DNA of 64,000 nucleotides, from NCBI RefSeq assembly GCF_006345805.1, contig NC_042997.1, forward strand, positions 117,924,001 to 117,988,000, in the 5' to 3' direction. This document shows positions 7,101 to 61,408 of the stretch, in pieces (position 1 is the first letter of the stretch; the number at the start of each line of letters is the position of its first letter). Origin of the DNA: Octopus sinensis. Taxonomy: Eukaryota. Under the pieces are notes generated by a model. It was not told where the DNA came from and did no database searches. It was given only the letters and a program-made list of their open reading frames with translations. The translations under genes and the position numbers were made by a program.

Positions 7101-7249
7101 GAGTTTCCACCAGTATTTTACACCAACACCGAAACGAACCAACTTTTTATACGCGTATTTTTGTTTTATATTAACGTTTCATATATTTGGCTTCTACAGC
7201 CTGTAATATACTTTTCTTTAAATGCAAGAAATTAAACAAGAAATAGATT

Positions 7250-7387
7250 ACAAACTACAGAATTTTCTCAAGAAAGTCAAGAGAAAAAGATGTTTTATTT
7301 GACACATTCTACCAGTATACGAAGTTTAAAAGTGTTTAGTTACAAAGAAATTACTAAAAAAATCTGCCGGTCAAAGCGAAAAGATCC
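7250..7387. mobile_element. One-ended fragment of the GGATC MITE family
   Basis: Ends in CTGCCGGTCAAAGCGAAAAGATCC; its subterminal sequence matches the full copies. Confidence 0.7.
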
Positions 7388-7645: not shown

Positions 7646-8850
7646 CCATCTTTTCGGTTTGAACGGCAGTTTTTAACATAATTTCTAGGTAACTAAAAAA
7701 TTTTAAACTTCGTATACTGATAGAATGTGTCTATAAAACATCTTTTTCTCTTGGCTTTATTGAGAAAATTCTATAGTTTGTGAGATATTTGTTGTTTTTT
7801 TCTTCAATTTCTGCAATTTCAACCAATCACTGACGTCTATTGAGGTAAAAAAAACATTTTGTGCAGTATGAATATGTCCCCCGTTTAAGAAACAGATTGG
7901 GTTTATTTACATTTGTGAAGAAAAAAAGATACCCTTCCCCCACCCCTAACCCTCCTAACTAACCCTAACCCTAAAACATTGAAATGCAATAGATCGATAC
8001 TAGGGTCATAATTATGGGTGACAATTTGGATCTTTTCCTTTTGAACGGCAGTTTTCAACACAATTTCTACTTAACTAAACACTTTTAAACTTCGTATACT
8101 GGTAGAATGTGTCAAAATAAAACATTTTTTTCTCTTGACTTTCTTGAGAAAATTGTAATTTGTAAGTTTAACGTAGTTTAATTTTTCAAATTTTAACCAA
8201 TCGATGGCCTATATTGATCTAAAATCATTTGCTGCGTCTAAAACTGAGACAACATCCTGTCACTGACCCTAACCCTAACCCTAACCCCAATCCTAACACT
8301 AACCCTAACCCTAAATTTTAGCCTTTCGGGTTTTTTTTCTTAATTGTTAAATTAATTTAATTGTTACGCGTGTGTCTAAAATTATTCGTTTTGTTTTTGT
8401 TTTGAGATACACGTGTATTGTTTAAACTATTTTCCATTGCTTAAGAAAAAAAAAAAAACGAAAGGCTAAAACGAAAGCAATGGAAAATAATTTAAACAAT
8501 TAACAAACAAAATAATTCTATAATTTTATACACACGCTTTCCGAACTTAAACATAACAGTGACAGGATGTTGTCTCAGTTTTAGACGCAGCAAATGATTT
8601 TAGCTAAATAGAGGCCATCGATTGGTTAAAATTCGAAAAATTAAACTACGTTAAACTTACAAATTACAATTTTCTCAAGAAAGCCAAGAGAAAAAAAAAT
8701 GTTTCATGTTGACACATTCTACCAGTATACGAAGTTTAAAAGTGTTTAGTTAATTAGAAATTGTGTTGAAAACTGCCGTTCAAAAGGAAAAGATCCGACA
8801 ATTTCAAATGACACCGCTAGAAAAAACTGCCGTTCAAACCGAAAAGATCC
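7646..8850. mobile_element. GGATC-family MITE (host copy) interrupted by a related element
   Basis: Termini are CCATCTTTTCGGTTTGAACGGCAGTTTT and AAAACTGCCGTTCAAACCGAAAAGATCC. The family consensus resumes at 8805, after the insertion. Confidence 0.85.
8028..8796. mobile_element. Long-TIR (about 240 bp) non-autonomous DNA transposon with 8-bp TSD
   Basis: Arms 8028-8265 and 8557-8796 are reverse complements. The TSD GACAATTT is at 8020-8027 and 8797-8804. (CCCTAA)n lies just inside the left arm. Confidence 0.9.
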
Positions 8851-9725: not shown

Positions 9726-10096
9726 CTTAGACGAAGAAACTTTATTGTACCAAACAAGCTACAGATCTTAATGAAATGTGAAGAGGGATCGATTGCCATA
9801 CAAAATAAACGTTTTGCCGCATTCGTTAACATCTTTTCAGCGTTTTTATTCGAATTTTACCGTGGTTGAGTTTGATCTTTATCCTTCCAAAATCGATAAA
9901 ATAAATACCTCTGAAGTACTCTGAAGTACTGCGGTCAGTATAATCGTTTATACTTATCCCTGAAATGTTTGGCCTTGTTCCCATCTTTAAAATTCATTAT
10001 TAATTCATCAGGAGCATTGAACTGATCACGGCAATAATTTATTGAAATCATTGTTCAATCTAACACAACAGACAGGAAAAATACATTTAAAGATAT

Positions 10097-11963: not shown

Positions 11964-12195
11964 GGATCTTTTCTTTTTGATGGACGGAATTTTCTAGTTA
12001 ACTAAACAATTTGAAACTTCGTATACTGGTAGAATGTGTCAAAAGAAAACATTATTGTAAACAAAATTGGAAACAAAATTGTAATTTCTAAGTTTAACAG
12101 ATTGAAATGCAATAGATCGATACTAGGGTCATAATTATGGGTGACAGTTTCATATGACACCGCTAGAAAAACTGCCGTTCAAACCGAAAAGATCC
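11964..12195. mobile_element. Internally deleted, chimeric GGATC-family MITE
   Basis: The left end resembles the 8028 variant (GGATCTTTTCTTTTTG...GTGTCAAAA). The right end is the standard ...CAAACCGAAAAGATCC. Confidence 0.7.
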
Positions 12196-15022: not shown

Positions 15023-15099
15023 TTGAACTAGTCCAAAAAGAAAGAAAAAAAGTGAACTTTGAACTGGCCCGTTTTAATACTACGCATTTTCGGTTGAAA

Positions 15100-15249
15100 C
15101 ACACACACATACATACATACATACATACATACATACATACATACACACAAGCACATACACGCACACACATACACACATACATACATACATACATACATAC
15201 ATACATACATTCATACATACATACATTCATACATACATACATACATACA

Positions 15250-15282
<33 letters not shown>

Positions 15283-15538
15283 TTGTAACACACCGCCAAA
15301 ATACTAATCTCGATAAATTAGGCTTCTCAAAACCAGAAAGGAGAAAGCTAATTCGAAGACTACAGATCCAATCCATCACTGGAACTAAAAATCTGGAAAA
15401 CTTTCCAGCAGTTTATATTCTAAGTATATATTAGCTTGTGTAGATATGCAGCTATATGCATGAGAATACATACGTAAAGTAAAACATACAAATCTGCACA
15501 CCTTCATGCATACATACATACATGCATACATACATACA

Positions 15539-15570
<32 letters not shown>

Positions 15571-15588
15571 CATACATACATACATACA

Positions 15589-15621
<33 letters not shown>

Positions 15622-15956
15622 TTGTAACACACCGCCAAAATACTAATCTCGATAAATTAGGCTTCTCAAAACCAGAAAGGAGAAAGCTAATTCGAAGACT
15701 ACAGATCCAATCCATCACTGGAACTAAAAATCTGGAAAACTTTCCAGAAGTTTATATTCTAAGTATATATTAGCTTGTGTAGATATGCAGCTATATGCAT
15801 GAGAATACATACGTAAAGTAAAACATACAAATCTGCAGACCTTCATGAATACATACATACATGCATACATACATACATAATACATACATACATACATGCA
15901 TGCATGCATACATACATACATACATACATACATTCATACATACATACATACATACA

Positions 15957-15989
<33 letters not shown>

Positions 15990-16376
15990 TTGTAACACAC
16001 CGCCAAAATACTAATCTCGATAAATTAGGCTTCTCAAAACCAGAAAGGAGAAAGCTAATTCGAAGACTACAGATCCAATCCATCACTGGAACTAAAAATC
16101 TGGAAAACTTTCCAGAAGTTTATATTCTAAGTATATATTAGCTTGTGTAGATATGCAGCTATATGCATGAGAATACATACGTAAAGTAAAACATACAAAT
16201 CTGCACACCTTCATGCATACATACATACATACATGCATACATACATACATAATACATACATACATACATACATGCATGCATGCATACATACATACATACA
16301 TACATACATACATACATACATACATACATACATGCATACATACATACATACATACATACATACATACATACATACA
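15100..16376 (+). repeat. Three tandem copies of a ~230-bp LINE 3'-end fragment separated by (ATAC)n
   Basis: Cores at about 15279-15508, 15618-15847 and 15986-16215 are nearly identical. They translate VTHRQNTNLDKLGFSKPERRKLIRRLQIQSITGT and, after a frameshift, KIWKTFQKFIF*, which resembles the C-terminus of an RLE-class non-LTR ORF. Confidence 0.85.
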
Positions 16377-16829: not shown

Positions 16830-17530
16830 TCAACAGAACCTACTGGTGTAAGCCAGCATGCTCGCATTGTTACCACAGGCAATGGCGAGGCTAAGTCTTT
16901 GGAGCAGTCAAGTGCCCTCACGGGTATCACCAGAGACACCTCGGTAAAGTGATCCACCAACGATAGCAAGAACATTTGTTGTTAGCGGCCCAGCCCCACC
17001 AAACATTTCAAACGCCGCAGGCTGGAAGAAATTGTTCACCGACAAGTCTCGATACTTAAGGATTTTATTCTGTTTGGCTACAGAAGCAGTGACCCCGCCA
17101 CCGCCATTTACCGCAGCATTCAGAATGTGAGAAGGACCAAAAGAATCACAGACTGTGGCGTCCCAGATGAGACACCTACCTCTTATTTCTTTACTGCCCA
17201 CATGGGGCTGCACACAGAGGGGACAAACAAGAGCAGACAAAGGGATTAAGTCGATTGCATCGACCCCAGTGCGTAACTGGTACTTATTTAATCGACCCCG
17301 AAAGGATGAAAGGCAAAGTCGACCTCAGCGGAATTTGAACTCAGAACGTAGCGCCAGATGAAATACTTCTAAGCATTTCGCCCCGGCATGCTAACGTTTC
17401 TGCCAGCTTGCCGCCTTTTAGGCACCTACCTCTTACTCTAGGAAAAGAGTAACACCATCGTTTCTGGATAATTCCGCCGGCTCCAGAACTAAGGGGATAT
17501 TAACCCAAGCCAGGGCCCGCTTAATGATCA
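16830..17530 (-). pseudogene. CRE-clade non-LTR retrotransposon, restriction-like endonuclease remnant
   Basis: Translation gives NLIIKRALAWVNIPLVLEPAELSRNDG, then the SINE, then GRCLIWDATVCDSF...KILKYRDL...FQPAAFEMFGGAG...GDTREGT*LLQRLSLAIACGN, matching CRE/Cnl1 RLE motifs. Confidence 0.85.
17186..17418 (-). mobile_element. Young full-length SINE with 13-bp TSD, inserted in the CRE remnant
   Basis: TSD CACCTACCTCTTA at 17173-17185 and 17423-17435; the 5' end AAGGCGGCAAGCTGGCAGAA is intact. Confidence 0.9.
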
Positions 17531-18070: not shown

Positions 18071-18130
18071 AGAATAGAATAGTCTATAGTTTCCTTTATG
18101 ACGTCACACTTGCAATAAAAGTCTATAAAA
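18071..18130 (+). promoter_or_regulatory. Proximal promoter of basic-protein gene A: conserved block, CRE and TATA box
   Basis: GAATAGAATAGTCTATA...TTTATGACGTCACACT is shared with gene B. TGACGTCA is at 18099-18106 and TATAAAA at 18124-18130, about 100 bp upstream of the ATG. Confidence 0.7.
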
Positions 18131-18227
18131 GCGGCATAATTTCTTCCAGCGCTTACATTTGCCGTGTTCCATTAACCTCTTCGAGACCTATTTTTCTACA
18201 TAGTGGCTTAAAACCTCAGATAGAAAG

Positions 18228-18776
18228 ATGACCAGTTTAAAAGGCTCTTCTCGTAGATGTCCATACAGAGTATGCAAAGAAGAGAGAAAAGCAAAGAAAA
18301 GGAATCAGAGATACCCCAAACTGAAATACTCTTCAAAACATAATACGGGGAGCAATCGGGTATTAAGCAATAGCAACCGGCATCCAAAGTGTCTGAGTAG
18401 AAGTCAATCGGGAAATTCTTACAGGGCTCTTTTCAGAACGAAGAAAAGAACCAAGAGTATGAGAGACTCCAGGGGACATAATTGTACAAGAGTTCAAAGT
18501 ACTTCGAATCGGAAGTTAAAACAGAGAAAGCCGAAACGTAGGACAGTTCCCAAGCACTCAACTTCATCGGAAGTTCAAGCGGTAACCTCTCAAGAAATTT
18601 CAGAACAGGCAAATAATGACAAAATGTTATTGTCGCATGTTTCAGAAAGCAGTTCTTCGAAAGGAACAGAAACAGATTGCAATGCTCAGGTGGATGAACC
18701 TGTATCGAATGCTTTGGATATGGACAGATATGATCAGACGATTACATCACAAAATACAATTCTCGGTAGGGTTTAA
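18228..18776 (+). CDS. Basic-protein gene A: 182-aa protein, R/K/S-rich N-terminal part and acidic C-terminal part; putative protamine-like sperm nuclear basic protein
   Basis: Intact non-repetitive ORF with about 36 R+K in the first 110 aa (counted by hand). It aligns end to end with the ORF at 26384-26923. ATG context AAAACCTCAGATAGAAAGATG is conserved, and AATAAA is at 18789-18794. The function is inferred from composition only. Confidence 0.7.
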   Translation: MTSLKGSSRRCPYRVCKEERKAKKRNQRYPKLKYSSKHNTGSNRVLSNSNRHPKCLSRSQSGNSYRALFRTKKRTKSMRDSRGHNCTRVQSTSNRKLKQRKPKRRTVPKHSTSSEVQAVTSQEISEQANNDKMLLSHVSESSSSKGTETDCNAQVDEPVSNALDMDRYDQTITSQNTILGRV

Positions 18777-19112
18777 TTATTTGTATTAAATAAAAATATA
18801 TATTTAAATTTCTCTTGTCTTTATTCTCCACCGAGAACTTATATTTCTTGTAAAACTATACCTGTACATGCATATTCAAATTAAAATATTGTCACATGTC
18901 TACCTGTATACATCAGAGTTTTAAGTAATAAATTTTTTAGAACCTCAATGGGTGTTTTGTGTTGTAATATACATCGTTAGCAGATGTTAAAATACCAAGT
19001 ATTCAACTTTAATTGACTGTAGAACGGTAAATTTTGCGTTATCCTCCCCAGGAAGGAAAAGAGATGGGGTTTCAACAATGGAGGCTACTTTCGAAGTTCA
19101 GTTTATGGAATT

Positions 19113-19533
19113 GTGTGTGTGTTGTGTTTTGCGCGCGCGCGCGCGCGTGTGTGTTGTGTGTTTTTTTTTGTGTGTGTTGTATTTTGTTGTGTGTGTGTTG
19201 TAGTGCGTGTGTGTGTATGTTGTGTTTTGTGTTGTTTTGCGTGTGTGTGTGTGCGTGTGTTTTGTGTTGTGTGTGTGCGTGTGTTTTGTGTTGTGTGTGT
19301 GCGTGTGTTTTGTGTTGTGTGTGTGCGTGTGTTTTGTGAGTTTTGTGTTGTGTGTGTTTTGTGAGTTTTGCGTGTGTGTGTGTGTGTGTTTTGCTTGTAT
19401 GTGTGTGTGTGTTTTGTGTGTTGTGTGTTTTGCGTGTGTGTGTGTATGTGTGTGCCGCTCGGTGTAATCTTTGAATCTGCCGGACTCCCCAAGCCTCCGT
19501 GTGTGTGTTTTGTGTGTGTGTGTTTTGTGTTGT

Positions 19534-19570
<37 letters not shown>
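19113..19570 (+). repeat. Compound (TG)n/(GTTTT) microsatellite with two copies of a ~45-bp GCCGCTCGGTGTAA...GAATCTGCCGG unit
   Basis: Direct reading; the unit occurs at about 19454 and 19571. Confidence 0.8.
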
Positions 19571-19572
<2 letters not shown>

Positions 19573-19701
19573 CGCTCGGTGTAACCCTTGAATCTGCCGG
19601 GTTCCCTCAAGCCTATCTCAAGATCATAGAGCAGACCCAAAAGATGCCCTCCCTGTAAAAAGCGTTCGCCCGGGGCAGACCGCTACCCCATATAACTGCG
19701 C

Positions 19702-20112
19702 TATTATTGCCCACAAGGGGCTAAACATAGAGAGGACAAACAAGGACAGACAAAGGGATTAAGTCGATTACATCGACCCCAGTGCGAAACTGGTACTTTA
19801 TTTATCGACCCAAAAAGGATGAATGGCAAAGTCGACCTCGGCGGAATTTGAACTCAAAACTAACGACAGACGAAATACCTATTTCTTTACTACCTACAAG
19901 GGGCTAAACACAGAGGGGACAAACAAGGACAGACAAGCGGATTATAGGTGAGACATCGACTCCAGTGCGTAACTGGTACTTAATTTAATGACCCCGAAAG
20001 GATGAAAGACAAAGTCGACCACGGCGAAATTTGAACTCAGAACGTAACGGCAGACGAAATACCGTTAAGAATTTCGCCCGGCGTGCGAACAATTCTGCCT
20101 GCTCGCCGCCTT
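19702..20112 (-). mobile_element. Dimeric SINE (full-length unit followed by a 5'-truncated unit)
   Basis: Two head-to-tail cores (about 19702-19880 and 19882-20112), with the same layout as 24553-24970. Confidence 0.8.
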
Positions 20113-20477
20113 GAGCGGGCATTTTGGACGTGGAGGTCATCGATTTATAAGGAGGTATAAAACCGAATCCTGGAGCACACGGTGTCGCTTTTAAGGAATG
20201 TAAAATGTTCCGTCAATATATGCAACAGTAGTGCAATCTGAAAGGAGGCTATTGATCCAAAACATGCAGTTTCGATATGAAATTCGCATTATATATAAAG
20301 GTAAACTTTGCTATTATCGAAGACATTACTTTCACCAAATTTCAGCCACAGCAAGTGTCCACTGATGGGCGACATAAGAAGAGGGTGTCTATGCCTGTTC
20401 GTGACAATGTAACCTAAAACTAGTGGTACAAACATGTTAAAATTCGATTGAGAGTGACGGTTAGGTTTTACACGTAA

Positions 20478-20950
20478 GCAGGCGTGCGCGTGTGCATTCA
20501 ACAAACACACGCAGGCATGCGTGCGTGCATGCATTCTTCAGCGCCAACACGCGCAACACGTGCACGGGTGTGCGCTCGGGCCGCGCACTCTCCTGCGCCA
20601 ACACGCGCGCGGGCATGCGCTCGCGCCGCGCACTCTCCTGCGCCAACACGCGCAACACGTGTGCGGGCGTACGCTCGCGTCGTGCACTCTACGGCACCAA
20701 CACACGCAACACGTGCGCGCGCACCGTGCACCTTTCGGCGCCAACACACACAACACGTGCGCGCTCCGTGCATTGTTCGACGCCAACGTACGCAAAACGT
20801 ACGCGGGCGTACGCTCGCGTCGCGCACTCTACAGCACCAACAAACGCGGGTGTGCGCTCGCGCCGCGCACTCTCCTGCGCCAACACGCGCAACACGTGCG
20901 CGGGCGTGCGCTCGCGCCGCGCACTCTCCTGCACCAACGTACGCAAAACG
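20478..20950 (+). repeat. GC- and CpG-rich degenerate minisatellite
   Basis: Recurring GCGCTCGCGCCGCGCACTCTCCTGCGCCAACACGCGCAACACGTG units. Confidence 0.85.
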
Positions 20951-21029
20951 GACGAAGGTTGCAAATCGACTCAACCAAAAGTAGCGAAACGTCCCGCCTA
21001 ACAACAACACTGATGGACATCGAAAAAAG

Positions 21030-22925
21030 ACTGCAACAATCCTATGTGAGGAGAAAGCAGACAAAGAAGCCTGGGTTATAAAAAACATTAAGTCAAAGCC
21101 AAAGGCCTTCTTTCATTACGCGAAAGAAACAACCTCAGTACACTACAAGATAAGACCCCTCCTCCAAAAGGATGGCTCCCTCACAGACAGTCCAACTAAG
21201 ATCAGTGAGATACTGAATGACCAGTTCAAAAGTGTCTTTACCACCCAGTTGGAACACAGACAAGTGAACGAACCAGTGGACTTCTTTGCCGCCTCACCTA
21301 TAACCAGCGAGGCAGTTACAATGAAATACATTGACATTAGCGAAGAAGATATACTACTAGCCATAGATGAAGTGGACACAAACTCAACTGCTGGTCTGGT
21401 GGTTTCCCAGCAATCCTCCTCAAATCGTGTAAGCATGCCCTGGCAAAACCCCTCAAGATTCTCTTCCAGAGCTTTCTTGCAAATGGCAAACTGCTAAGCA
21501 AGCTGAAGGAGGGAATAACATGCCCAATACATAAAGGGGGAAGTAGAGCAGATGCCAAAAACTATAGGCCTATCTCTCTGACTTGAAACATCAGCAAAGC
21601 CATGGAACGGATAGTCAGAGGGAAACTAATCGCATTCTTTGAAAAAAATAACCAGCATGATTTTCGACCAGGTAGGAACTGCCTGACCCAGCTCTTACAA
21701 CATTACAACAAATCAAATGTGGATGTAATATACCTTGATTTTACAAAAGCATAGCTGGAAAACTTGGAGTGTGTTTACATGACTTCCTGAAAGATAGGAG
21801 TCAGGCAGTAGTAGCTAATGGAGCCACCTCTTTGAACACACAAATAGTGAGCGGTGTTCCATAGGGCACTGTCTTGTGATCACTGCTCTTTATAGTGGCC
21901 CTCTCAGATATGCCCTCAAATGCCCGAATAGCCACCTTGGCAAGCTATGCAGATGATACGAAAGTCTCGCAGAAAATACAGAACCCCAGCGATGTTGCAC
22001 ACCTGCAGCAGGAGTTGGACTCAATTTACAGATGGGCTGAGGATAATAATATGCAGTTTAATGCTGAAAAATTACAGGCCCAGCGCTACCAGCATCCAAA
22101 ACTGAATATGAAACTTACAGGGTACACCGGTCCTCAGGGAATTTCAATCCCAGAGCCTAAGTCAGTGAGGGACCTGGGTATCGACATGAGGTATGATACC
22201 TATTTCCAAATGCACATTACCAGGATGGTGACAAAGTGCAGACGACTGGCTGGATGGATCCTAAGAACATTCAGAACCAGAGATAAGGAAACCATGATGG
22301 TCCTCTGGCGGACTTTCGTCCTCAACCGCCTGGATTATTGCTCACAGCTATGGTCACCCACCAGTATGAAATTAACAGCGGACCTTGAAGCAATCCAGAG
22401 AAGATTCACAAAGAAGATCGTCTCTTTGCAACAGCTCAGCTACTGGGAAAGGTTGAAACAGCTAAGACTCTACTCCCTGGAGAGAAGACGGGAGAGGTAT
22501 GCAGTAATATATGTCTGGAAGATCCTGGAAGGAATTGTGTCATATTTTGGCACTGAAAGCTACACCAATACCAGAACGGGACGACACTGCATAGTGCCAA
22601 AGTTCCCAGCAATGCCATCACGCTTCAGGACCAGTTACTGCAACAGCCTGGGTTTCAAGGGCCCACAGCTTTTTAATATTCTCCCAAAGAGTCTGAGGAA
22701 CTTGCACAAAGTAGATGTAGGGGTTTTAAATCAAAGCTGGACCTCTTCATGTCGAGAGTCCCAGATGAACCTGCCTCATGGCAAGAGGTGCAAATGAGGG
22801 TAGCTGTATCAAACTCCATTCTTCACCAAGTGCCACATATTAGAGGAGGTTCTTCGTAATAACAGTGTAGCACAAAACGGTGGTGCATCAGCATGGCCGC
22901 AGCTCTGAGCTGAGACTAAAAAAGA
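21030..22925 (+). mobile_element. 5'-truncated CR1/L2-group LINE with 3' UTR (decayed ORF2)
   Basis: Translation gives IKNIKSKPKAFFHYAK...EILNDQFKSVFT and KNYRPISLT. ORF 21895-22797 carries the RT motif YADDTKV plus RDLGI, LDYCSQLWSP and LYSLERRRERY. Stops, frameshifts and deletions occur upstream. Confidence 0.9.
21895..22797 (+). pseudogene. Reverse transcriptase C-terminal half of the CR1-group LINE (300-aa open segment)
   Basis: ASYADDTKV catalytic motif; the N-terminal RT subdomains lie in broken frames. Confidence 0.85.
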
Positions 22926-24074
22926 ATATATATAATAACTTTGATACGTTTCGGCCAGTACGGGCCCAGGCCATGTCTATATATATACATGTATGTATAT
23001 GTACTCGTACAAAATGGATCCTCCGCCGTTTTCGTCGATGAGCATTCAACTGTTTGAGGCAGTCATAGAGCGACAGACAAATTGTTTTTCGCTGGGAACG
23101 GCCGAAAAAGTGTTTGGTGTCAGCTCACGACTACAGCAACACCTAAAACAATAATCGGTAGTATGGTGTATGTTACTAGCGAAACATTGAGCATGTAACC
23201 ACTGAAGAAAGAGAGGAAGGACTACACCAGCACTTGGCTAGTACCAATCTTCATTTTACCACGTAAAATGGGGATGCCTTGCTGAAATACACAACACACC
23301 GGGATCTTTTCGGTTTGAACGGCAGTTTTTTCTAGCGATGTCATATGAAATTGTCACCCATAATTATGACCCTAGTATCGATCTATTACATTTCAATCTG
23401 TTTTTGGTTTAGGGTTAGAGTTAGGGTTAGGGGGTATCATTTTTTCTTCAGAAATGTAAATAAACCCAATCTGTTTCTTAAACGAGGCACATATTCATAC
23501 GGCGCAGAATGCTTTTGCCTCAATAGACGTCATTGATTGGTTGAAATTGCAGAAATTGAAGAAAAAAACAACAAATATCTTACAAACCATAGAATTTTCT
23601 CAATAAAGCCAAGAGAAAAAGATATTTTATAAACACATTCTACCAGTATAGGAAGTTTTTTATAGTATAGGAAGTTTTTTAATTACCTAGAAATTGTTAA
23701 AAACTGCCGTTCAAACCGAAAAGATCCCCAATCTTGGTACCAATGAAGATTGGTACTAGCCAAGTGCTGGTGTAGTCCTTCCTCTCTTTCTTCAGTGGTT
23801 ACATGCTTAATGTTTCGCTAGTAACATACACCATACTACCGATTATTGTTTTAAGTGTTGCTGTAGTCGTGAGCTGACACCAAACACTTTTTCGGCCGTT
23901 CCCAGCGAAAAAATTTGTCTGTCGCTCTAATGACTGCCTCAAACAGTTGAATGCTCATCGACGAAAACGGCGGAGGATCCATTTTGTACGAGTACATATA
24001 CATACATGTATATATATAGACATGGCCTGGGCCCGTACTGGCCGAAACGTATCAAAGTTATTATATATATTCTT
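22923..24074. mobile_element. Foldback-type element with 333-bp inverted arms
   Basis: 22923-23255 is a near-perfect reverse complement of 23742-24074. The spacer is occupied mostly by a MITE. Confidence 0.85.
23302..23727. mobile_element. GGATC-family MITE, full length
   Basis: Both ~28-bp TIRs are present, with an internal (TTAGGG)-like tract at 23405-23431. No clean TSD. Confidence 0.9.
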
Positions 24075-24350
24075 CAATTTCAACCAATCAATGACGTCTA
24101 TTGAGGTGAAAACATTCTGTGCCGTATGAATATGTCCCTCGTTTAAGAAACAGATTGGGTTTATTTACATTTGTAGAAACAGATTGGGTTTATTTACATT
24201 TGTGAAGAAAAAAAGAAACCCTTCCCCCCCACCCCTAACCCTAACCCTGAAACAGATTGAAATGCAATAGATCGATACTAGGGTCATAATTATGGTGACA
24301 ATTTCATATGACACCGCTAGAAAAAACTGCCGTTCAAACCGAAAAGATCC
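24075..24350. mobile_element. Truncated GGATC-family MITE with an internal 29-bp tandem duplication
   Basis: AGAAACAGATTGGGTTTATTTACATTTGT occurs twice; the copy ends GAAAAGATCC. Confidence 0.85.
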
Positions 24351-24429
24351 ATTTGATGTCTAAAAAAAATCTTTTTATATTTTTATATTTTATATTTTTA
24401 GAATGAAATATATATCGTATATAATTAAA

Positions 24430-25105
24430 AGATACAGAAATATTTTATTCTCAAACGCATGACAATGCCAATACAGTAGCATGAACAGGATAAACTACCC
24501 ATTTATTGCAGAACAATTCGTTACTGGGCAGTTTAGCTTAAAGGTAAAGCACTAAGGCGGCGAGCTGGCAGAAACGTTAGCACGCCGGGCGTAATGCTTA
24601 GTGGTATTTCGTCTGCCGTTACGTTGTAAGTTCAAATTCCGCCGAGGTCGACTTTGCCTTAAATCCTTTCGGGGTCGATAAATTAAGTACCAGTTACGCA
24701 CTGGGGTCGATGTAATCGACTTTAATACCTATGTCTGTCCTTGTTTGTTCCCTCTGTGTTTAGCCCCTTGTGGGTAATAAAGAAATAGGTATTTCCTCTG
24801 CCGTTACGTTCTGAGTTCAAATTCCGCCGAGGTTGACTTTGCCTTTCATCCTTTCGGAGTCGATTAAATAAGTACCAGTTACGCACTGGGGTCGATATAA
24901 TCGACTTAATCCGTTTGTCTGTCCTTGTTTGTCCTGTCTGTGTTTAGCGCCTTGTGGGTAGTAAAGAAATAGGTAAAGCATTAACGCGTAATCACATGGA
25001 TGTGAGTTCGAGTCTCATGGCTGCAATATATGGATAGGTTTATCCTGTTCATGCTATTGTATTAACATTATCATGCGTTTGAGAATAAATTATTTCTGAA
25101 TCTTT
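24430..25105. mobile_element. Small inverted-repeat element (arms about 70-80 bp) containing a SINE dimer
   Basis: TTTATTCTCAAACGCATGA...GCATGAACAGGATAAAC (about 24430-24500) pairs with GTTTATCCTGTTCATGC...TCATGCGTTTGAGAATAAA (about 25030-25105). Confidence 0.7.
24553..24970 (+). mobile_element. Dimeric SINE with 10-bp TSD
   Basis: A full unit plus a truncated unit; AGGTAAAGCA lies at 24542-24551 and 24971-24980. Confidence 0.85.
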
Positions 25106-25643
25106 CAATACATCTCAACGCTTCTATTTGATTACTTTCATCGTAAGTTGAATATATAATTAAATATTTTTGTAATTAATATGAATTTTATAAGAAAAAT
25201 GTTAGATGTATAACCAATTTATTGCAAATAAAATTTAGAAAAATCTAAGGTTGAGAAGGGACAGAATATGTCCATCAATACATTGAGAGTGGTGATATAG
25301 GATTTGTTAGAACTAGGATTCAGTCGATGCTCAGGAGTCTTGAACAAGCTACAAAATCTTCCGTGGGCGCTATGTGAACCCCATGAGCAATACAGACCTC
25401 GGTTGAGAACCATTTGTTCAGAGGATTATGCAAAGTGTGATAGCTGGAAGGAGTGAGGATTGTACTAGGATGGTACTCATTCTAGCAGAGCAGACTGGAA
25501 TAACATGAAATGAGATGCCTCACTCAGAAACACAGCGTTTTGACTAGCCGAGAATTGAACCCACGACCTTATGGTCGTCAGCGGAACACTCCCCAAACGG
25601 AAGCCTCGACTAAAATGTTCAATTAAGCAGAAGCTAAAACAAT

Positions 25644-26056
25644 GGATCTTTTCGGCTTGACCGGCAGTTTTTAAAAATAATTTCCACGTAACTAAGCACT
25701 TTAAAACTTCCTATACTGGTAGAATGTGTTTATAAAACATCTTTTTCTCTTGGCTTTATTGAGAAAATTCTATAGTTTGTAAGATATGTTGTTTTTTCTT
25801 CAATTTCTGCAATTTCAACCAATCAATGATGTCTATTGAGGTGAAAACATTCTATGCCGTATGAATATGTCCCTCGTCTAAGAAACAGATTAGGTTTATT
25901 TACATTTGTGAAGAAAAAAAGATACCCTTCCCCCCACCCCTAACCCTGACTCTAAAACAGATTGAAATGCAATAGATCGATTCTAGGGTCATAACTATGA
26001 GTGGCAATATCATATGACACCGCTAGAAAAAACTGCTGTTCAAACCGAAAAGATCC
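25644..26056. mobile_element. GGATC-family MITE, full length, 8-bp TSD
   Basis: TSD AAAACAAT at 25636-25643 and 26057-26064. Confidence 0.92.
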
Positions 26057-26228
26057 AAAACAATATCGAGGAAGTTTTGATATGGTACTTCGTGTGTAGA
26101 TCAAACTCTATCAAAGTTTTTCTTTTCTTATCATCTGTATGGGGCACCAGACATACTGGGTAGATTGAATAAACTATACTCTCCCCAACATTCTAGGGAC
26201 TTATGTATATTATTATAATTATATTAGG

Positions 26229-26280
26229 GAATAGAATAGTCTATAATCTCTTTATGACATCACACTGACGTCACAGACGT
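26229..26280 (+). promoter_or_regulatory. Proximal promoter of basic-protein gene B with tandem CRE-like sites
   Basis: Contains the block shared with gene A, plus TGACATCA (26255-26262) and TGACGTCA (26266-26273). No canonical TATA box is visible. Confidence 0.65.
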
Positions 26281-26383
26281 AGATATTGAACGTCATTCTT
26301 TCAAGCTTTTTCATTCACCGTGTTTCAGATATAACTTCGTGACCAATTTTTCTATACAGCAGATTAAAACCTCAGATAGAAAG

Positions 26384-26923
26384 ATGGTTACCTTAAGCAG
26401 CAGTTCTCGCAGATATCCATACAGAGTATACAAAGGACACAGAAAAGTAAAGAGATGTTCGAAACACTCAAAACCGAGAAGTTCTTCCAAATATTTGTAC
26501 GATAACCGAGGATCACAGAGCAAAAGTAACCGGTATCGCAAGAGTCTGAGCAGAAGTTATTCGAAAAATTCTTATAGGCCTCTTTCCGGGACGAAGAAAA
26601 CTAAAAGAGATTCTAGGAGACATAGATTTCGAGGTAAAGGAACTTCAAATCGAAGGACGAGGCAGAGAGTCAAGAGGCGTAGGCGAACTCGCAATCATAC
26701 AGGCTCTTTGACGAAACAAGCTGAGATGCCTCAAGATTGTTCAGAACAGGAGAATGCTGATACCACGGAATTAAAATCGAATACTCCAGTAAATGATTCT
26801 ACAAACGATGGGGAAACGGTTCGTAGTGTCCAGACGGATGAAAATATGCCAAATGCGTTGGCAATGGACAGTAAAGACCAAGGGGCAAAAACACAAAATG
26901 CGTCTGTCGGTACGATTGAATAA
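26384..26923 (+). CDS. Basic-protein gene B: 179-aa paralog of gene A; putative protamine-like sperm nuclear basic protein
   Basis: The ATG at 26384 aligns with the gene A start; the GTG start at 26339 in the track is unlikely. About 39 R+K in the first 110 aa, including RRTRQRVKRRRRTR, followed by a D/E/T/N-rich tail. AATAAA is at 26942-26947. Confidence 0.72.
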   Translation: MVTLSSSSRRYPYRVYKGHRKVKRCSKHSKPRSSSKYLYDNRGSQSKSNRYRKSLSRSYSKNSYRPLSGTKKTKRDSRRHRFRGKGTSNRRTRQRVKRRRRTRNHTGSLTKQAEMPQDCSEQENADTTELKSNTPVNDSTNDGETVRSVQTDENMPNALAMDSKDQGAKTQNASVGTIE

Positions 26924-26994
26924 TGATTTGAATTTTAAAAAAATAAAGAAATGAAAATATTAATTTTAGTCTTATTCTCAAATATAAATCTTTT

Positions 26995-27413
26995 GGATCT
27001 TTTCGGTTTGAACGGCAGTTTTTTCTAGCGGTTTCATATGAAATTGTCACCCATAATTATGATCCTAGTATCAATCTATTGCATTTCAATCTGTTTTAGA
27101 GTCAGGGTTAGGGGTGGGGGGTAGGGTATCTTTTTTTCTTCTCAAATGTAAATAAACCCAATCTGTTTCTTAAACGAGGGACATATTCATACGGCACTGA
27201 ATGTTTTCACCTCAATAGACGTCGTTGATTGGTTAAAATTGCAGAAATTGAAGAAAAAAAAAACAATAAATATCTTACAAACTATAAAATTTTCTCAATA
27301 AAGCCAAGAGAAAAAGATGTTTTATAAACACATTCTACCAGTATAGGAAGTTTAAAAGTGTTTAGTTACGTGGAAATTATTTTAAAAAACTGCCGGTCAA
27401 ACCGAAAAGATCC
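26995..27413. mobile_element. GGATC-family MITE, full length, opposite orientation to the 25644 copy
   Basis: Both TIRs are present; the flanks TAAATCTTTT and TAAACCTTTT suggest a 10-bp TSD with one mismatch. Confidence 0.9.
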
Positions 27414-27589
27414 TAAACCTTTTTAAAGTCGTATTTCAATTTCTTCGTGTATAAAAAGAATAATTGTGCTTTGTTATAAGATGTTTTAGATAACGAAATC
27501 AATGTGTTAACTTGAATACATCAAACAGATGGCATATATGGCAAAGCATAGATAATTACTGGTGTAACGCCCGTAATTACATGTGTAAT

Positions 27590-28038
27590 ATCATACATAC
27601 ATGCATATATACATACATAAATACATACATACATACATACATACATAAATACATACATACACACACACATACATACATACATACATACAGTACGTACGTA
27701 CGTACGTATGTATGTATGTATGCATGCATGCATGTATTTATGTATGTATGTATGTATGTATGTATGTATTTATGTATGTATGTATGTATTTATGTGTGTA
27801 TGTATGTATGTATGTATGTATGTATGTATGTATGTATGTATGTATGTATTTATGTATGTATGTATGTATGTATGTATGTATGTATGTATGTATGTATTTA
27901 TGTATGTATGTATTTATGTGTGTATGTATGTATTTCTGTATGTATGTATGTGTGTACGTATGTATGTATGTATGTATTTATGTATATATGTATGTATGTA
28001 TGTATATATTTATGTATGTATGTATGTATGTATGTAAG

Positions 28039-28069
<31 letters not shown>

Positions 28070-28427
28070 GTATGTATGTATAATGTATACATGTATGTAT
28101 GTATGTATTTGTGTGTATGTATGTATTTATGTATGTATGTGCGTACGTACGTACGTACGTACGTATGTATGTATGTATGTATGTATGTACGTATCTATGT
28201 ATGTATTTATGTATGCATGTATGTATGTATTTATGTATGTATGTGCGTACGTACGTACGTACGTACGTACGTACGTATGTATGTATGTATGTATGTATGT
28301 ATGTATGTATGATGTTATGTATGTATGTATGTATGATGTATGTATGTACGTATCTATGTATGTATTTATGTATGTATGCATGTATGTATTTATGTATCTA
28401 TGTATGTATGTATTTATGAATATTATG

Positions 28428-28461
<34 letters not shown>

Positions 28462-29027
28462 TGTATGTATGTATGTATGTATGTATGTATGTATGTATGT
28501 ATGTATGTATGTGTGTGTGTGTGTATGTATGTATCTGTGTGTGTGTGTATGTATGTATCTATGTGTGTGTGTATGTATGTATGTATGTGTGTGTGTATCA
28601 TGTATGTATGTATTTATGTATGCATGTATGTATGTATTTATGAATATATGTATGTATGTATGTGTATGTATGTATGTATGTATGTGTGTGTGTATGTATG
28701 TATCTATGTGTGTGTATGTATGTATGTGTGTGTGTATGTATGTATGATGTATATATGTATATATGTATGTATTTATGTATGTATGTATTTATGTATGTAT
28801 TTATGTATGTATTTATGTATGTATGCATGTATGTATGTATGCATGTATGCATGTATGCATGTATGCATGTATGTATTTATGTATGTATGTATGTATGTAT
28901 GTATGTATGTATGTATGTATGATGTATGTATGTATGTATGTGTGTGTGTGTGTATGCATGTATGTATGTATGTATGTATGTATGCATGTATGTATGTATG
29001 TATGTATGTATGCATGTATGTATGTAT
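27590..29027. repeat. About 1.4-kb (ATAC)n/(GTAT)n microsatellite with a strand switch near 27690
   Basis: Direct reading; the junction is (GTAC)n. Confidence 0.95.
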
Positions 29028-30464: not shown

Positions 30465-30881
30465 GGATCTTTTCGGTTTGAACGGCAGTTTTTTAAAATA
30501 ATTTCTACGTAACTTAAGCTCTTTTAAACTTCGTATACTGGTAGAATGTGTTTATAAAACATCTTTTTCTCTTGGCTTTATTGAGAAAATTCTATAGTTT
30601 GTAAGATATTTGTTGTTTATTTCTTCAATTTCTGCAATTTCGACCAATCAATGACGTCTATTGAGGTGAAAACATTCTGTGCCGTATGAATATGTCCCTC
30701 GTCTAAGAAACAGATTGGGTTTATTTACATTTGTGAAGAAAAAAAGATACCCTTCCCCCCACCCCTAACCCTAACCCTAAAACAGATTGAAATGCAATAG
30801 ATCGATACTAGGGTCATAATTATGGGTGACAATTTCATATGACACCGCTAGAAAAAACTGCCGTTCAAACCGAAAAGATCC
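30465..30881. mobile_element. GGATC-family MITE, full length
   Basis: Both TIRs are present, with an internal CCCTAACCCTAACCCTAA. Confidence 0.9.
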
Positions 30882-31412: not shown

Positions 31413-31695
31413 GATATTCAACAGCTCATTGATAGTCTCAGCTCGCTTGATATTCAATAAACGCTCAGTGCACCTCTCGGATTATTCGATTATATTAACC
31501 AGTCATGATGGACCTGTGGGATGACGTCAGCAGCTGGGGAGCTGACCGGAAGAGGAAGGGGAAGGAGTGACGCGCGCGCAGGGAGGGAGCATGGGTCCTT
31601 TTTCGATCGAGATAGAAGAAAAGGTGACACCGCATTAGTAATTCTACATTTCCCTCCTTTCACGATAAATATTTATAGTATAAGATATAATACTG

Positions 31696-39770: not shown

Positions 39771-41290
39771 TGGGTACTTATTATTTGTACTTATTATTAA
39801 GCAGGCAAGTAGGCTGTTGTACCGCGAGTAAGAAGGTTGGCAAGTGTAGTAGTGACCGGAGATGGTTAGGTCTTTATATGTGTATGGAAGGAGAGAAAAT
39901 AGTAGTTCAGTAAAGGAGAAGTTGTAAGACTGAGAAGTAGTGGGAGAAAGTAATAGCAATGAGAGAGAGAGAGGAATATTGCTATTAATAATTAAGGCGA
40001 AGTAGTGGTTGAATACTGAAGTCCACACAAACACACGAGCGACAGGTTAGTTTTTTCGTCTGCGTTGGTGAAAAAAGTGACGAGCGACAGGTTAGTTTTT
40101 TCGTCTGCGTTGGTGAAAAAAGTGACGAGCGACAGGTTAGTTTTTTCGTCTGCGTTGGTGAAAAAAGTGACGAGCGACAGGTTAGATGGGTACATATTAT
40201 TTGTACTTATTATTAAGCAGGCAAGTAGGCTGTTGTACCGCGAGTAAGAAGGTTGGCAAGTGTAGTAGTGACCGGAGATGGTTAGGTTTTTATATGTGTA
40301 TGGAAGGAAAGAAAATAGTAGTTCAGTAAGGGAGAAGTTGTAAGACTGAGAAGTAGTGGGAGAAAGTAATAGCAATGAGAGAGAGGAATATTGCTATTAA
40401 TAATTAAGGCGAAGTAGTGGTTGAATACTGAAGTCCACACAAACACACGAGCGACAGGTTAGTTTTTTTCGTCTGCGTTGGTGAAAAAAAAAGTGACGAG
40501 CGACAGTTAGTTTTTTCGTCTGCGTTGGTGAAAAAAGTGACGAGCGACAGGTTAGTTTTTTCGTCTGCGTTGGTGAAAAAAGTGACGAGCGACAGGTTAG
40601 TTTTTTCGTCTGCGTTGGTGAAAAAAGTGACGAGCGACAGGTTAGTTTTTTCGTCTGCGTTGGTGAAAAAGTGACGAGCGACAGGTTAGTTTTTTCGTCT
40701 GCGTTGGTGAAAAAAGTGACGAGCGACAGGTTAGTTTTTTCGTCTGCGTTGGTGAAAAAAGTGACGAGCGACAGGTTAGTTTTTTCGTCTGCGTTGGTGA
40801 AAAAAGTGACGAGCGACAGGTTAGTTTTTTCGTCTGCGTTGGTGAAAAAAGTGACGAGCGACAGGTTAGTTTTTTCGTCTGCGTTGGTGAAAAAGTGACG
40901 AGCGACAGGTTAGTTTTTTCGTCTGCGTTGGTGAAAAAAGTGACGAGCGACAGGTTAGTTTTTCGTGCTGCGTCTGCGTTTGAAAAAAGTGACGAGCGAC
41001 AGGTTAGTTTTTTCGTCTGCGTTGGTGAAAAAAGTGACGAGCGACAGGTTAGTTTTTTCGTCTGCGTTGGGTACTTATTATTAAGCAGGCAAGTAGGCTG
41101 TTGTACCGCGAGTAAGAAGGTTGGCAAGTGTAGTAGTGACCGGAGATGGTTAGGTTTTTATATGTGTATGGAAGGAAAGAAAATAGAAGTTCAGTAAAGG
41201 AGAAGTTGTAAGACTGAGAAGTAGTGGGAGAAAGTAATAGCAATGAGAGAGAGGAATATTGCTATTAATAATTAAGGCGCAGTAGTGGTG
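39771..41290 (+). repeat. Composite tandem array: three ~220-240-bp units interleaved with 45-bp repeats
   Basis: Long units are at about 39771, 40188 and 41069. The 45-mer GTGACGAGCGACAGGTTAGTTTTTTCGTCTGCGTTGGTGAAAAAA occurs about 3 times (40035-40185) and about 14 times (40445-41068). Confidence 0.92.
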
Positions 41291-41406: not shown

Positions 41407-44400
41407 ACATTACAACAAAGTTGGGTTAGAAAAAAAAGTTCAATTTCCCGGCGCACATTACAACAAAGTTGGGTTAGAAAAAAAAGTTCGATTTCCCGGC
41501 GCACATTACAACAAAGTTGGGTTAGAAAAAAAAGTTCGCTTTCCCGGCGCCACATTACAACAAAGTGGGTTAGATAGAAAACAAAGTTCGATTTCCCGGC
41601 GCACATTACAACAAATGTGGGTTAGAAAAAAAAGTTCGATTTCCCGGCGCACATTACAACAAAGTTGGGTTAGAAAAAAAAGTTCGATTTCCCGGCGCAC
41701 ATTACAACAAAGTTGGGTTAGAAAAAAAAGTTCGATTTCCCGGCGCACATTACAACAAAGTTGGGTTAGAAAAAAAAGTTCGATTTCCCGGCGCACATTA
41801 CAACAAAGTTGGGTTAGAAAAAAAAGTTCGATTCCCGGCGCACATTACAACAAAGTTGGGTTAGAAAAAAAAGTTCGATTTCCCGGCGCACATTACAACA
41901 AAGTTGGGTTAGAAAAAAAAGTTCGATTTCCCGGCGCACATTACAACAAAGTTGGGTTAGAAAAAAAGTTCGATTTCCCGGCGCACATTACAACAAAGTT
42001 GGGTTAGAAAAAAAAGTTCGATCCCGGCGCACATTACAACAAAGTTGGGTTAGAAAAAAAAGTTCGATTTCCCGGCGCACATTACAACAAAGTTGGGTTA
42101 GAAAAAAAAGTTCGATTTCCCGGCGCACATTACAACAAAGTTGGGTTAGAAAAAAAGTTCGATTTCCCGGCGCACATTACAACAAAGTTGGGTTAGAAAA
42201 AAAAGTTCGATTTCCCGGCGCACATTACAACAAAGTTGGGTTAGAAAAAACAGTTCGATTTCCCGGCGCACATTACAACAAAGTTGGGTTAGAAAAAAAA
42301 GTTCGATTTCCCGGCGCACATTACAACAAAGATGGGTTAGAAAAAAAAGTTCGATTTCCCGGCGCACATTACAACAAAGTTGGGTTAGAAAAAAAAGTTC
42401 GATTTCCCGGCGCACATTACAACAAAGATGGGTTAGAAAAAAAAGTTCGATTTCCCGGCGCACATTACAACAAAGTTGGGTTAGAAAAAAGTTCGATTTC
42501 CCGGCGCACATTACAACAAAGTTGGGTTAGAAAAAAAATGTTCGATTTCCCGGCGCACATTACAACAAAGTTGGGTTAGAAAAAAAGTTCGATTTCCCGG
42601 CGCACATTACAACAAAGTTGGGTTAGAAAAAAAAGTTCGATTTCCCGGCACATACAAACAAGTTGGGTTAGAAAAAAAAGTTCGATTTCCCGGCGCATAT
42701 TACAACAAATTGGGTTAGAAAAAAAAGTTCGATTTCCCGGCGCACATTACAACAAAGTTGGGTTAGAAAAAAAGTTCGATTTCCCGGCGCACATTACAAC
42801 AAAGTTGGGGTTAGAGAAAAAAAGTTCGATTTCCCGGCGCACATTACAACAAAGTTGGGTTAAAAAAAAAAAGTTCGATTTCCCGGCGCACGTTACAACA
42901 AAGTTGGGGTTAGAGAAAAAAAAGTTCGATTTCCCGGCGCACATTACAACAAAGTTGGGTTAGAAAAAAAAGTTCGATTTCCCGGCGCACATTACAACAA
43001 AGTTGGGTTAGAAAAAAAAGTTCGATTTCCCGGCGCACATTACAACAAAGTGGGTTAGAAAAAAAAGTTCGATTTCCCGGCGCACATTACAACAAAGTTG
43101 GGTTAGAAAAAAAAGTTCGATTTCCCGGCGCACATTACAACAAAGTTGGGTTAGAAAAAAAAGTTCGATTTCCCGGCGCACATTACAACAAAGTTGGGTT
43201 AGAAAAAAAAGTTCGATTTCCCGGCGCACATTACAACAAAGTTGGGTTAGAAAAAAAAGTTCGATTTCCCGGCGCACATTACAACAAAGTTGGGTTAGAA
43301 AAAAAAGTTCGATTTCCCGGCGCACATTACAACAAAGTTGGGTTAGAAAAAAAGTTCGATTTCCCGGCGCACATTACAACAAAGTTGGGTTAGAAAAAAT
43401 TTCGATTTCCCGGGCCACTTACAACAAAGTTGGGTTAGAAAAAAAAGTTCGATTTCCCGGCGCACATTACAACAAAGTTGGGTTAGAAAAAAAAGTTCGA
43501 TTTCCCGGCGCACATTACAACAAAGTTGGGTTAGAAAAAAAAGTTCGATTTCCCGGCGCACATTACAACAAAGTTGGGTTAGAAAAAAAAGATCGATTTC
43601 CCGGCGCACATTACAACAAAGTTGGGTTAGAAAAAAAAGATCGATTCCCGGCGCACATTACACAAAGCTGGGTTAGAAAAAAAAGATCGATTTCCCGGCG
43701 CACATTACACAAAGTTGGGTTAGTTAGAAAAAAAGTTCGATTTCCCGGCGCACATTACAACAAAGTTGGGTTAGAAAAAAAAGTTCGATTTCCCGGCGCA
43801 CATTACAACAAAGTTGGGTTAGAAAAAAAGTTCGATTCCCGGCGCACATTACAACAAAGTTGGGTTAGAAAAAAAAGTTCGATTTCCCGGCGCACATTAC
43901 AACAAAGTTGGGTTACAAAAAAAAGTTCGATTTCCCGGCGCACATTACAACAAAGTTGGGTTAGAAAAAAAAGTTCGATTTCCCGGCGCACATTACAACA
44001 AAGTTGGGTTAGAAAAAAAAGTTCGATTTCCCGGCGACACATTACAACAAAGTTGGGTTAGAAAAAAAGTTCGATTTCCCGGCGCACATTACAACAAAGT
44101 TGGGTTAGAAAAAAAAGTTCGATTTCCCGGCGCACATTACAACAAAGTTGGGTTAGAAAAAAAAGTTCGATTTCCCGGCGCACATTACAACAAAGTTGGG
44201 TTAGAAAAAAAAGTTCGATTTCCCGCGCACATTACAAAAAGTTGGGTTGTTAGAAAAAAAGTTCGATTTCCCGGCGCACATTACAACAAAGTTGGGTTAG
44301 AAAAAAAAGTTCGATTTCCCGGCGCACATTACATCAAAGTTGGGTTAGAAAAAAAAGTTCGATTTCCCGGCGCACATTCAACAAAGTTGGGTTAGAAAAA

Positions 44401-61368: not shown

Positions 61369-61408
61369 AGCTCTTGCATACTTCTCCCCCTGAGCGAAGC
61401 GAAGCGAA

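Follow-up and report, generated by a model that had tools for sequence, protein, structure and literature searches.

A tandem pair of octopod orphan genes encoding candidate nuclear proteins with a basic N-terminal region and an acidic tail

What is encoded by two small neighbouring octopus genes whose products combine a strongly basic N-terminal region with an acidic C-terminal tail? The genes, which we call A and B, lie in a stretch of 64,000 nucleotides of the Octopus sinensis genome (contig NC_042997.1, positions 117,924,001 to 117,988,000, forward strand; hereafter the window, with positions counted from its first letter), and an earlier note on this DNA had taken them for rapidly diverged, protamine-like genes of cephalopod spermiogenesis. 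We find that A and B arose by an old tandem duplication of an orphan gene that, as far as the databases searched show, is restricted to octopods. The best explanation overall, to which we give a probability of about one half, is that this pair would encode a nuclear nucleic-acid binder whose acidic tail has a conserved motif for docking or autoregulation; transcription would be from a promoter that sets a cAMP response element (CRE) beside a TATA box, the male germline being the most plausible single setting.

A tandem pair of compact genes

The two genes are intact, single-exon reading frames on the same strand, as the earlier note had described them, and the 8.2 kb that it placed between them is a start-to-start spacing of 8156 bp. 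The ATG of B is aligned with that of A, while a mechanical list of open reading frames (ORFs) opens B at an upstream GTG (26339). Full-length alignment of the two products despite their divergence is likewise borne out, with 43% identity from end to end, 6 gap positions and E=6e-25 (BLASTP), and all gaps within the aligned coding DNA measure 3 or 9 bases and are hence in frame. Similarity at the DNA level runs from 18072 (A) and 26229 (B), about 155 bp 5' of each ATG, to about 18798 and 26945, so that the outer coordinates originally given for the pair were accurate. No third copy of the family was found within the window by tblastn.

The two-part composition of the products is equally clear. 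Lysine and arginine make up 32.7% (A) and 35.5% (B) of the first 110 residues, the one third that had been estimated, with 14.5-19% serine, an isoelectric point (pI) of 11.8-12.0 and a net charge of +33 in A and +37 in B; the remaining 70 or so residues are acidic, as claimed, with 17-20% Asp and Glu, a pI of 4.1 and a net charge of -8 and -9 respectively. Across the whole protein, arginine accounts for 11.5% of residues in A and 14.5% in B, Arg and Lys together for 22-25%, and the pI is 10.5-10.9. B is the more arginine-rich copy: its richest 30-residue window is 47% Arg, against 23% in A, and the ratio R/(R+K) is 0.35 in the Argonauta protein, 0.53 in A and 0.59-0.66 in B and its orthologues. 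Three clusters of Lys and Arg are conserved in the basic region (in A, RKAKKR, KKRTK and RKPKRR), and the tail of the A lineage has a core motif, SEQANxD...ESSSSK...Q-x-DEPVSNALDxD, which between Octopus and Argonauta reads SEQAN.D...LSH..ESSSSK..ET.CN.AQ.DEPVSNALD.D. Kyte-Doolittle means over 15 residues peak below 0, and the proteins have no hydrophobic stretch, which excludes both a signal peptide and a membrane segment. AlphaFold, working from a shallow alignment of 6 rows, returns a mean pLDDT (predicted local distance difference test score) of 50 and no secondary structure. The products are thus predicted to be hydrophilic and intrinsically disordered, and to lack a signal peptide.

Both copies are compact and intronless, each spanning about 0.75 kb from an upstream element to a poly(A) signal, with predicted transcript ends (Table 1). 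The upstream element, GAATAGAATAGTCTATA, is near-identical in a third octopus species (besides O. bimaculoides), can be recognised in Argonauta as AAATAGGACAGTCTATG, and is a candidate factor-binding site. Next to it stands a perfect CRE palindrome, TGACGTCA, to which a CREB/CREM-type factor would be expected to bind. There are three perfect CREs in the window where 0.71 are expected, and two of the three are those of A and B; the third lies at 31522 with no related ORF next to it and is taken as chance. At the position aligned with A's TATA box, Argonauta has TATAAAAC, and a leader block, CATTTGCCGTGTT (18156-18168 in A), which begins at the initiator-like site, is common to Argonauta as well, so that conservation of the CRE, the TATA box and the leader block reaches that genus. 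An in-frame TAG lies 9 codons 5' of the ATG of A, the predicted 73-nt leader has no upstream ATG, and the predicted 3' untranslated region (UTR) is about 30 nt. On the Argonauta contig (L003) a TGAGTCA sequence of AP-1 type follows the conserved CRE at about 9887-9893, in the interval from the first CRE to the TATA box that in Octopus B contains the second CRE.

Comparison with the third species shows how sharply this unit is bounded. The 155 bp of promoter and leader 5' of the ATG are 94% identical for A and 86% for B; the coding sequence is 96% identical for A, and 92% (basic half) and 84% (tail) for B; and the first 60 nt past the stop codon are 89% (A) and 93% (B) identical, beyond which A drops to 75%. 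The outer flanks are 43-75% identical, and the conserved footprint therefore extends from -155 to about +60 past the stop.

Table 1. Coding sequences and candidate control elements of genes A and B, in window positions.
Feature	Position	Strand	Remarks
Gene A upstream element GAATAGAATAGTCTATA	18072..18088	+	17 bp; 5' edge of conserved unit
Gene A perfect CRE palindrome TGACGTCA	18099..18106	+	Also in B, third species and Argonauta
Gene A TATA box TATAAAAG	18124..18131	+	17 bp 3' of CRE; read from sequence
Gene A initiator-like TTACATT	18153..18159	+	Predicted transcription start ~18155, 31 bp past TATA box
Gene A coding sequence	18228..18776	+	ATG start, 182 aa; basic region 1-110, acidic tail 111-182, conserved tail core ~125-166
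Gene A poly(A) signal AATAAA	18789..18794	+	13 nt past stop codon
Gene B upstream element GAATAGAATAGTCTATA	26229..26245	+	Identical to A's copy
Gene B CRE-like TGACATCA (26255-26262), then perfect CRE TGACGTCA (26266-26273)	26255..26273	+	Perfect CRE kept in third species
Gene B degenerate TATA-like TAGATATT	26280..26287	+	At position of A's TATA box by alignment; weaker than A's
Gene B coding sequence	26384..26923	+	ATG start, 179 aa; more Arg-rich paralogue (26 R, 18 K), Arg cluster at residues 74-103
Gene B poly(A) signal AATAAA	26942..26947	+	19 nt past stop codon

Relatives and unequal evolution of the two copies

Relatives of the pair were sought with two single-sequence searches and one profile search (word-indexed) over 5.8 billion proteins, and with a six-sequence profile compared by HMMER with 1.84 billion representatives. 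Among the 5.8e9 proteins the family forms 5 clusters with octopod members only, the HMMER profile recovered no other credible relative among the representatives, and the protein databases hold just two family proteins from O. bimaculoides. One further candidate, a 380-aa protein (P0007, E=1.5e-5), was rejected: it is a repeat protein carrying a motif of KWYxGxI type, and its match reflects composition. With hmmscan against Pfam-A at E<=10, A has only a spurious hit to 'Transformer' (E=2.6) and B has none, and there was no match to the family in a PDB sequence profile search, among viral contigs or in Rfam. These searches indicate that the family is of low copy number and, within the databases covered, restricted to Octopoda. 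The earlier suggestion of an undescribed cephalopod family consequently survives in that this appears to be an undescribed orphan family of intact genes, but the range seen is that of octopods and not of cephalopods as a whole. The UniProt accessions are not mentioned in the literature searched, nor do they appear in the supplements to a skin-mucus proteome of O. vulgaris; a paper on the O. maya testis transcriptome contained nothing relevant to the genes.

Both genes have orthologues in other octopuses. A is 97% identical to A0A0L8GAK6 of O. bimaculoides and 51% identical to a 167-aa protein of Argonauta hians (GAB1598102.1), while B is 90% identical to A0A0L8GBG6 of O. bimaculoides and 76% identical to its counterpart in the third octopus. 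The exact product of B is on record from the O. vulgaris assembly GCA_951406725.2 (OX597814.1, at 115.8 Mb), which is the chromosome-level reference for that species (bioRxiv 10.1101/2023.05.16.540928). In the third species, orthologues of A and B are carried on Logan contigs of about 1 kb (L001 and L004; runs SRR11869384/390/391). The possibility that these and two similar contigs (L002 and L005) represent cDNA was rejected; they are genomic, since promoter DNA and the microsatellites of the flanks are included in them. No recorded contig carries the A protein of the window or the exact O. bimaculoides protein. Maintenance of the reading frame in orthologues had been proposed as a test of the genes, and the frames are indeed open, for A and B in O. 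bimaculoides and the third octopus and for A in Argonauta hians. The loci themselves are orthologous for both A and B, because homology with the third species resumes in the flanks beyond a lineage-specific repeat insertion. In Argonauta a kelch-like gene lies 3' of the family member; the window lacks it, and synteny with Argonauta is uninformative.

The two copies have evolved very differently. Ratios of nonsynonymous to synonymous substitution (dN/dS, or omega) were estimated by the method of Nei and Gojobori, and branch values are three-point branch lengths calculated with Argonauta. The duplication is old, with a dS of about 0.72 between A and B. Between the window and the third species, A shows a dS of 0.127 and an omega of 0.21 (p=6e-4 for omega <1), with a value of 0.10 in its tail, and against Argonauta, at a dS of about 1.0, its omega is 0.35 (p=6e-5). 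The basic half of B also has a low omega in comparison with the third species (0.30, p=0.005; 14 nonsynonymous and 12 synonymous differences), whereas its tail has accumulated 30 nonsynonymous differences and only 4 synonymous ones (omega 2.1), and the heterogeneity between the two halves is significant (p=0.004). Synonymous divergence along the two branches since duplication is similar (0.34 for A, 0.38 for B), but nonsynonymous divergence is 0.09 for A against 0.36 for B, giving branch omegas of about 0.27 and 0.95. Fast evolution is therefore a property of B only, and of its tail above all, while A is under clear purifying selection; to call the pair 'rapidly diverged' is right for one copy and wrong for the other. 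When the A protein is compared with Argonauta by segment, residues 125-166 are the best conserved (71% identical), followed by residues 1-33 (67%), with residues 34-70 at 27%. Such a conserved tail core argues for a specific function and against a disposable spacer.

Surrounding repeats and the independence of the genes

Two explanations would deny A and B the standing of ordinary host genes, and we regard both as very improbable. The first is that a non-coding transcript contains them as chance ORFs, or that they are exons of some larger spliced gene, and the gene caller applied to the O. vulgaris assembly did call B but not A; yet omega is significantly less than 1, no indel breaks the frame, the ORF persists over a dS of about 1 to Argonauta, and the stop codon upstream of A's ATG closes the frame. 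Each copy has its own promoter anatomy, its own AATAAA and a bounded footprint beyond which conservation falls away sharply, which argues that it is not an exon of something larger. Given this purifying selection and their own conserved promoter and poly(A) signals, A and B are independent protein-coding genes of RNA polymerase II. Alternatively, the genes could derive from mobile DNA, either as the ORF1 or gag of a neighbouring long interspersed nuclear element (LINE) or as cargo between inverted copies of a miniature inverted-repeat transposable element (MITE). A truncated LINE of non-LTR (long terminal repeat) type, with a weak RVT_1 (reverse transcriptase) match, does lie between A and B (21895-22797, + strand), 3.1 kb 3' of A and on the same strand, but its relative in Argonauta (L003, 2160-3463, - strand) is upstream of the Argonauta gene and on the opposite strand, so that the element has no fixed linkage to the family. 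On either side of B lie 420-bp repeats in inverted orientation, 93% identical to each other (25644-26060, - strand; 26991 to about 27413-27419, + strand). They belong to an abundant MITE-like element, about 420 bp long and with GGATCTTTTCGG...CCGAAAAGATCC as its terminal inverted repeats, of which at least 8 copies or fragments occur in the window. A structure mobilising B was rejected, for the repeats are young insertions set against an old duplication, and the right-hand site is empty in the third species, where homology to contig L001 breaks off at 26994 and is picked up again at 27420. Flanks of this kind are absent from A, and both loci are orthologous across species. Origin from a transposon gag or ORF1, or from a high-copy repeat, was among the outcomes that the earlier note had listed as refuting its own reading, but no gag, zinc-knuckle (CCHC) or ORF1 domain was found with Pfam, there are two copies in the window and two family proteins in O. 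bimaculoides, and a low-copy, octopod-restricted family that lacks Pfam, PDB and viral relatives is not a transposon protein.

The neighbourhood is otherwise rich in repeats. Further copies of the MITE-like element occur at 30465-30881, 23302-23727, 7648-8027 and 24070-24351, with fragments at 7234-7387, 8028-8229, 8593-8796 and 12096-12195, and the empty site of the right-hand copy beside B suggests a possible target-site duplication, TAAA[T/C]CTTTT. A near-perfect, foldback-like palindrome at 22922-24074 (arms 22922-23275 and 23724-24074, 96.6-100% complementary) has a MITE-like copy inside it. A repeat of about 183 bp (83-90% identity), apparently an interspersed family, is present as tandem pairs in both orientations on either side of A (17184-17417, 19704-20063, 24554-24975). 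Micro- and minisatellites surround both genes (15099-16376, 19147-19614, 20541-20944, 27690-29027) and include (ACAT)n with a 368-bp higher-order unit, (GT)n-rich sequence, GC-rich 54/140-bp repeats and (GTAT)n in about 337 copies; they account for the long low-complexity 'ORFs' of the mechanical list.

Almost one third of the window is occupied by two satellite arrays, at 41407-50272 (48-bp unit, about 186 copies) and 50379-61368 (a related 40-bp unit, about 277 copies), which have a common core, CGGCGCACATTACAACAA..GGTTAGAAAAAA, and a strong AT skew. They are flanked by further tandem arrays, a 45-bp unit at 40035-41070 (96-100% identity), (AGCTA)n at 61393-62855 (about 297 copies) and, at 62847-63937, a 50/70/120/190-bp higher-order repeat built on CTAAG repeats. 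On the opposite strand 3' of B, a multi-exon gene call with a 101-aa product extends from about 29862 to beyond 36923. In Argonauta, an apparently intact LTR-type retrotransposon with long gag-like, protease-reverse transcriptase and integrase ORFs lies about 1.7 kb 5' of the homologous gene (L003, 4093-8260, - strand).

Possible function and significance

In proposing a function for the pair, we have to accommodate a basic region that retains its clusters of Lys and Arg, a tail whose core is the best-conserved segment of the A lineage, and a promoter with a CRE beside its TATA box. Our preferred reading is as follows. A CREB/CREM-type factor on the conserved CRE beside the TATA box would probably drive transcription, and the conserved clusters would direct the protein to the nucleus, where the cationic Ser/Arg/Lys-rich region (residues 1-110) could bind DNA or RNA electrostatically. 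A PY-type nuclear import signal at RRCPY was dropped as a candidate; Argonauta has PN there, so it is not conserved. The tail core would be a motif for autoregulation or for the specific docking of a partner, and not a bulk neutraliser of charge. After duplication, A retained the ancestral, constrained function; B became more arginine-rich and its tail evolved at or above the neutral rate. Gene architecture and asymmetric evolution together make the male germline, with a role in the chromatin transition of spermatids, the most plausible single site of action, although we would allow this roughly one chance in three. The features that suggest a spermatid role are small intronless tandem genes, a CRE beside the TATA box, a very short 3' UTR, lineage restriction and a fast paralogue that is gaining arginine, and none of these is diagnostic.

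Several considerations weigh against this interpretation as a whole. Nuclear targeting, nucleic-acid binding, use of the CRE and tissue are all deduced from sequence, and promoters that combine a CRE with a TATA box likewise drive stimulus-induced genes in somatic cells. The excess of nonsynonymous change in the tail of B is not significant when tested alone against an omega of 1 (p=0.14), and relaxed constraint could explain it. Copy number across whole octopus genomes has been judged indirectly, from protein databases and the 64-kb window, and low AlphaFold confidence from an alignment of just 6 rows is weak evidence of disorder.

The proposal of the earlier note was that A and B are precursors of a sperm nuclear basic protein, of which the basic N-terminal part would condense sperm DNA while the acidic C-terminal part neutralised or chaperoned it, to be cleaved off later. 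The genes have much that recalls such a role, since they are small, intronless and tandem, with a CRE beside the TATA box like the mammalian protamine and transition-protein genes, the N-domain is rich in Ser, Arg and Lys with a pI of about 12, and B is fast-evolving and shifted towards arginine (R/(R+K) rising from 0.35 in Argonauta). We nevertheless consider it unlikely, and in two respects the proposal fits poorly. A charge of -8 or -9 cannot neutralise one of +33 or +37, and a tail that is best conserved at its core in the A lineage, with an omega of 0.10 in A, is not what would be expected of a disposable propeptide. Mollusc protamine-like (PL) proteins, in Ausio's classification, contain roughly 35-50 mol% Lys and Arg; the whole A and B proteins fall below this range, and the N-domain reaches its lower edge, a comparison relevant only if the tail is removed. 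Nor did A or B match Pfam Protamine_P1, P2 and related models (hmmscan, E<=10) or the TP1/TP2 families; there was no linker-histone (H1/H5) match in Pfam, no PDB sequence relative and no folded domain in the AlphaFold model, and for the HMG box and the HMGN nucleosome-binding domain no Pfam match and no predicted helices. In two accounts, protamines are arginine-cluster proteins of pI >= 12, among them the Cys-rich protamine of an octopod, Eledone (PMC12216123; PMC11607694), a description that A and B do not reach with 11.5-14.5% Arg overall and 33-35% Arg and Lys in the N-domain. The cephalopod protamines presented there resemble A and B in their small size, in strong basicity, in containing Ser and Arg and in coming from the same group of animals, and their precursors are known to be processed, as is common for sperm nuclear basic proteins (PMC12216123); however, no sequence similarity between them and A or B was detected, arginine is several-fold lower in A and B, the N-domain mixes Lys, Arg, Ser and Asn, and an acidic C-terminal domain with a conserved motif is added. 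The known precursors described (earlier note; PMC12216123) shed N-terminal leaders and not C-terminal pieces, while the acidic part of A and B is C-terminal. The A and B proteins are not sperm protamine itself, and the label 'protamine-like' does not suit them. Quite unlikely, too, is a role unrelated to sperm, in which the genes would encode a stimulus-induced nuclear regulator of immediate-early type, activated by way of the CRE in a somatic tissue, for instance the nervous system. Its attractions are the perfect CRE directly 5' of the TATA box, to which Argonauta adds its AP-1-like motif, and the fact that short intronless units encoding disordered nuclear proteins are typical of immediate-early genes. 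Against it, though not decisively, the predicted 3' UTR is so short that there is no room for the usual AU-rich instability elements, and lineage-restricted genes with a fast tandem paralogue are more typical of reproduction.

Three further groups of proteins, none of them homologous as far as we can detect, offer analogies to the pair. TNP1, TNP2 and the PRM1-PRM2-TNP2 cluster of mammals are likewise small, clustered genes with CRE-type elements near the TATA box, as in CREM-dependent spermatid promoters, and share an intermediate basicity based on Ser, Lys and Arg. They would be the nearest functional analogy if A and B prove to be expressed in testis, but the mammalian genes have an intron and lack an acidic tail, and the resemblance is one of analogy only. 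For a basic region and an acidic tail working together, the best analogy may be proteins of HMGN/HMGB type, which are largely disordered and in which a cationic region binding nucleic acid or nucleosomes is followed by an acidic regulatory tail; unlike these, A and B have no HMG box or HMGN motif, and HMGN proteins are specific to vertebrates. The MST-HMG-box family of Drosophila (ProtA/ProtB) is also taxon-restricted and tandem, with fast-evolving paralogues and a mixed basic composition of heterogeneous Lys, His and Arg (PMC12216123), but is defined by an HMG-box-like fold, whereas no domain can be detected in the octopod proteins, for which disorder is predicted. A more novel reading, which we offer as doubtful, is that A and B may form a class of spermatid chromatin-transition proteins peculiar to octopods and without relation to the H1-derived and HMG-box proteins of sperm. 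In it the basic region would displace histones from DNA, and the DEPVSNALDxD tail, a conserved acidic motif studded with hydrophobic residues, would capture them or a remodelling partner. B would then be subject to sexual selection or genetic conflict, for which its arginine enrichment and tail omega above 1 are cited.

What the pair means for octopod biology depends on where it is expressed. If it is not testis-specific, it would be an ordinary but well-defined orphan family, the main practical value of which would be for annotation, since gene A is missing among the recorded genes of the O. vulgaris assembly in the collection searched. If it is testis-specific, these would be the first intermediate chromatin proteins to be defined by sequence in octopod spermiogenesis, for which so far the final Cys-rich protamines alone have been described biochemically, and the pair would provide a clean case of a lineage-restricted duplication followed by asymmetric evolution. 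The CRE-TATA module would then imply that control of haploid chromatin genes by CREB/CREM-type factors either predates the vertebrates or has arisen by convergence.

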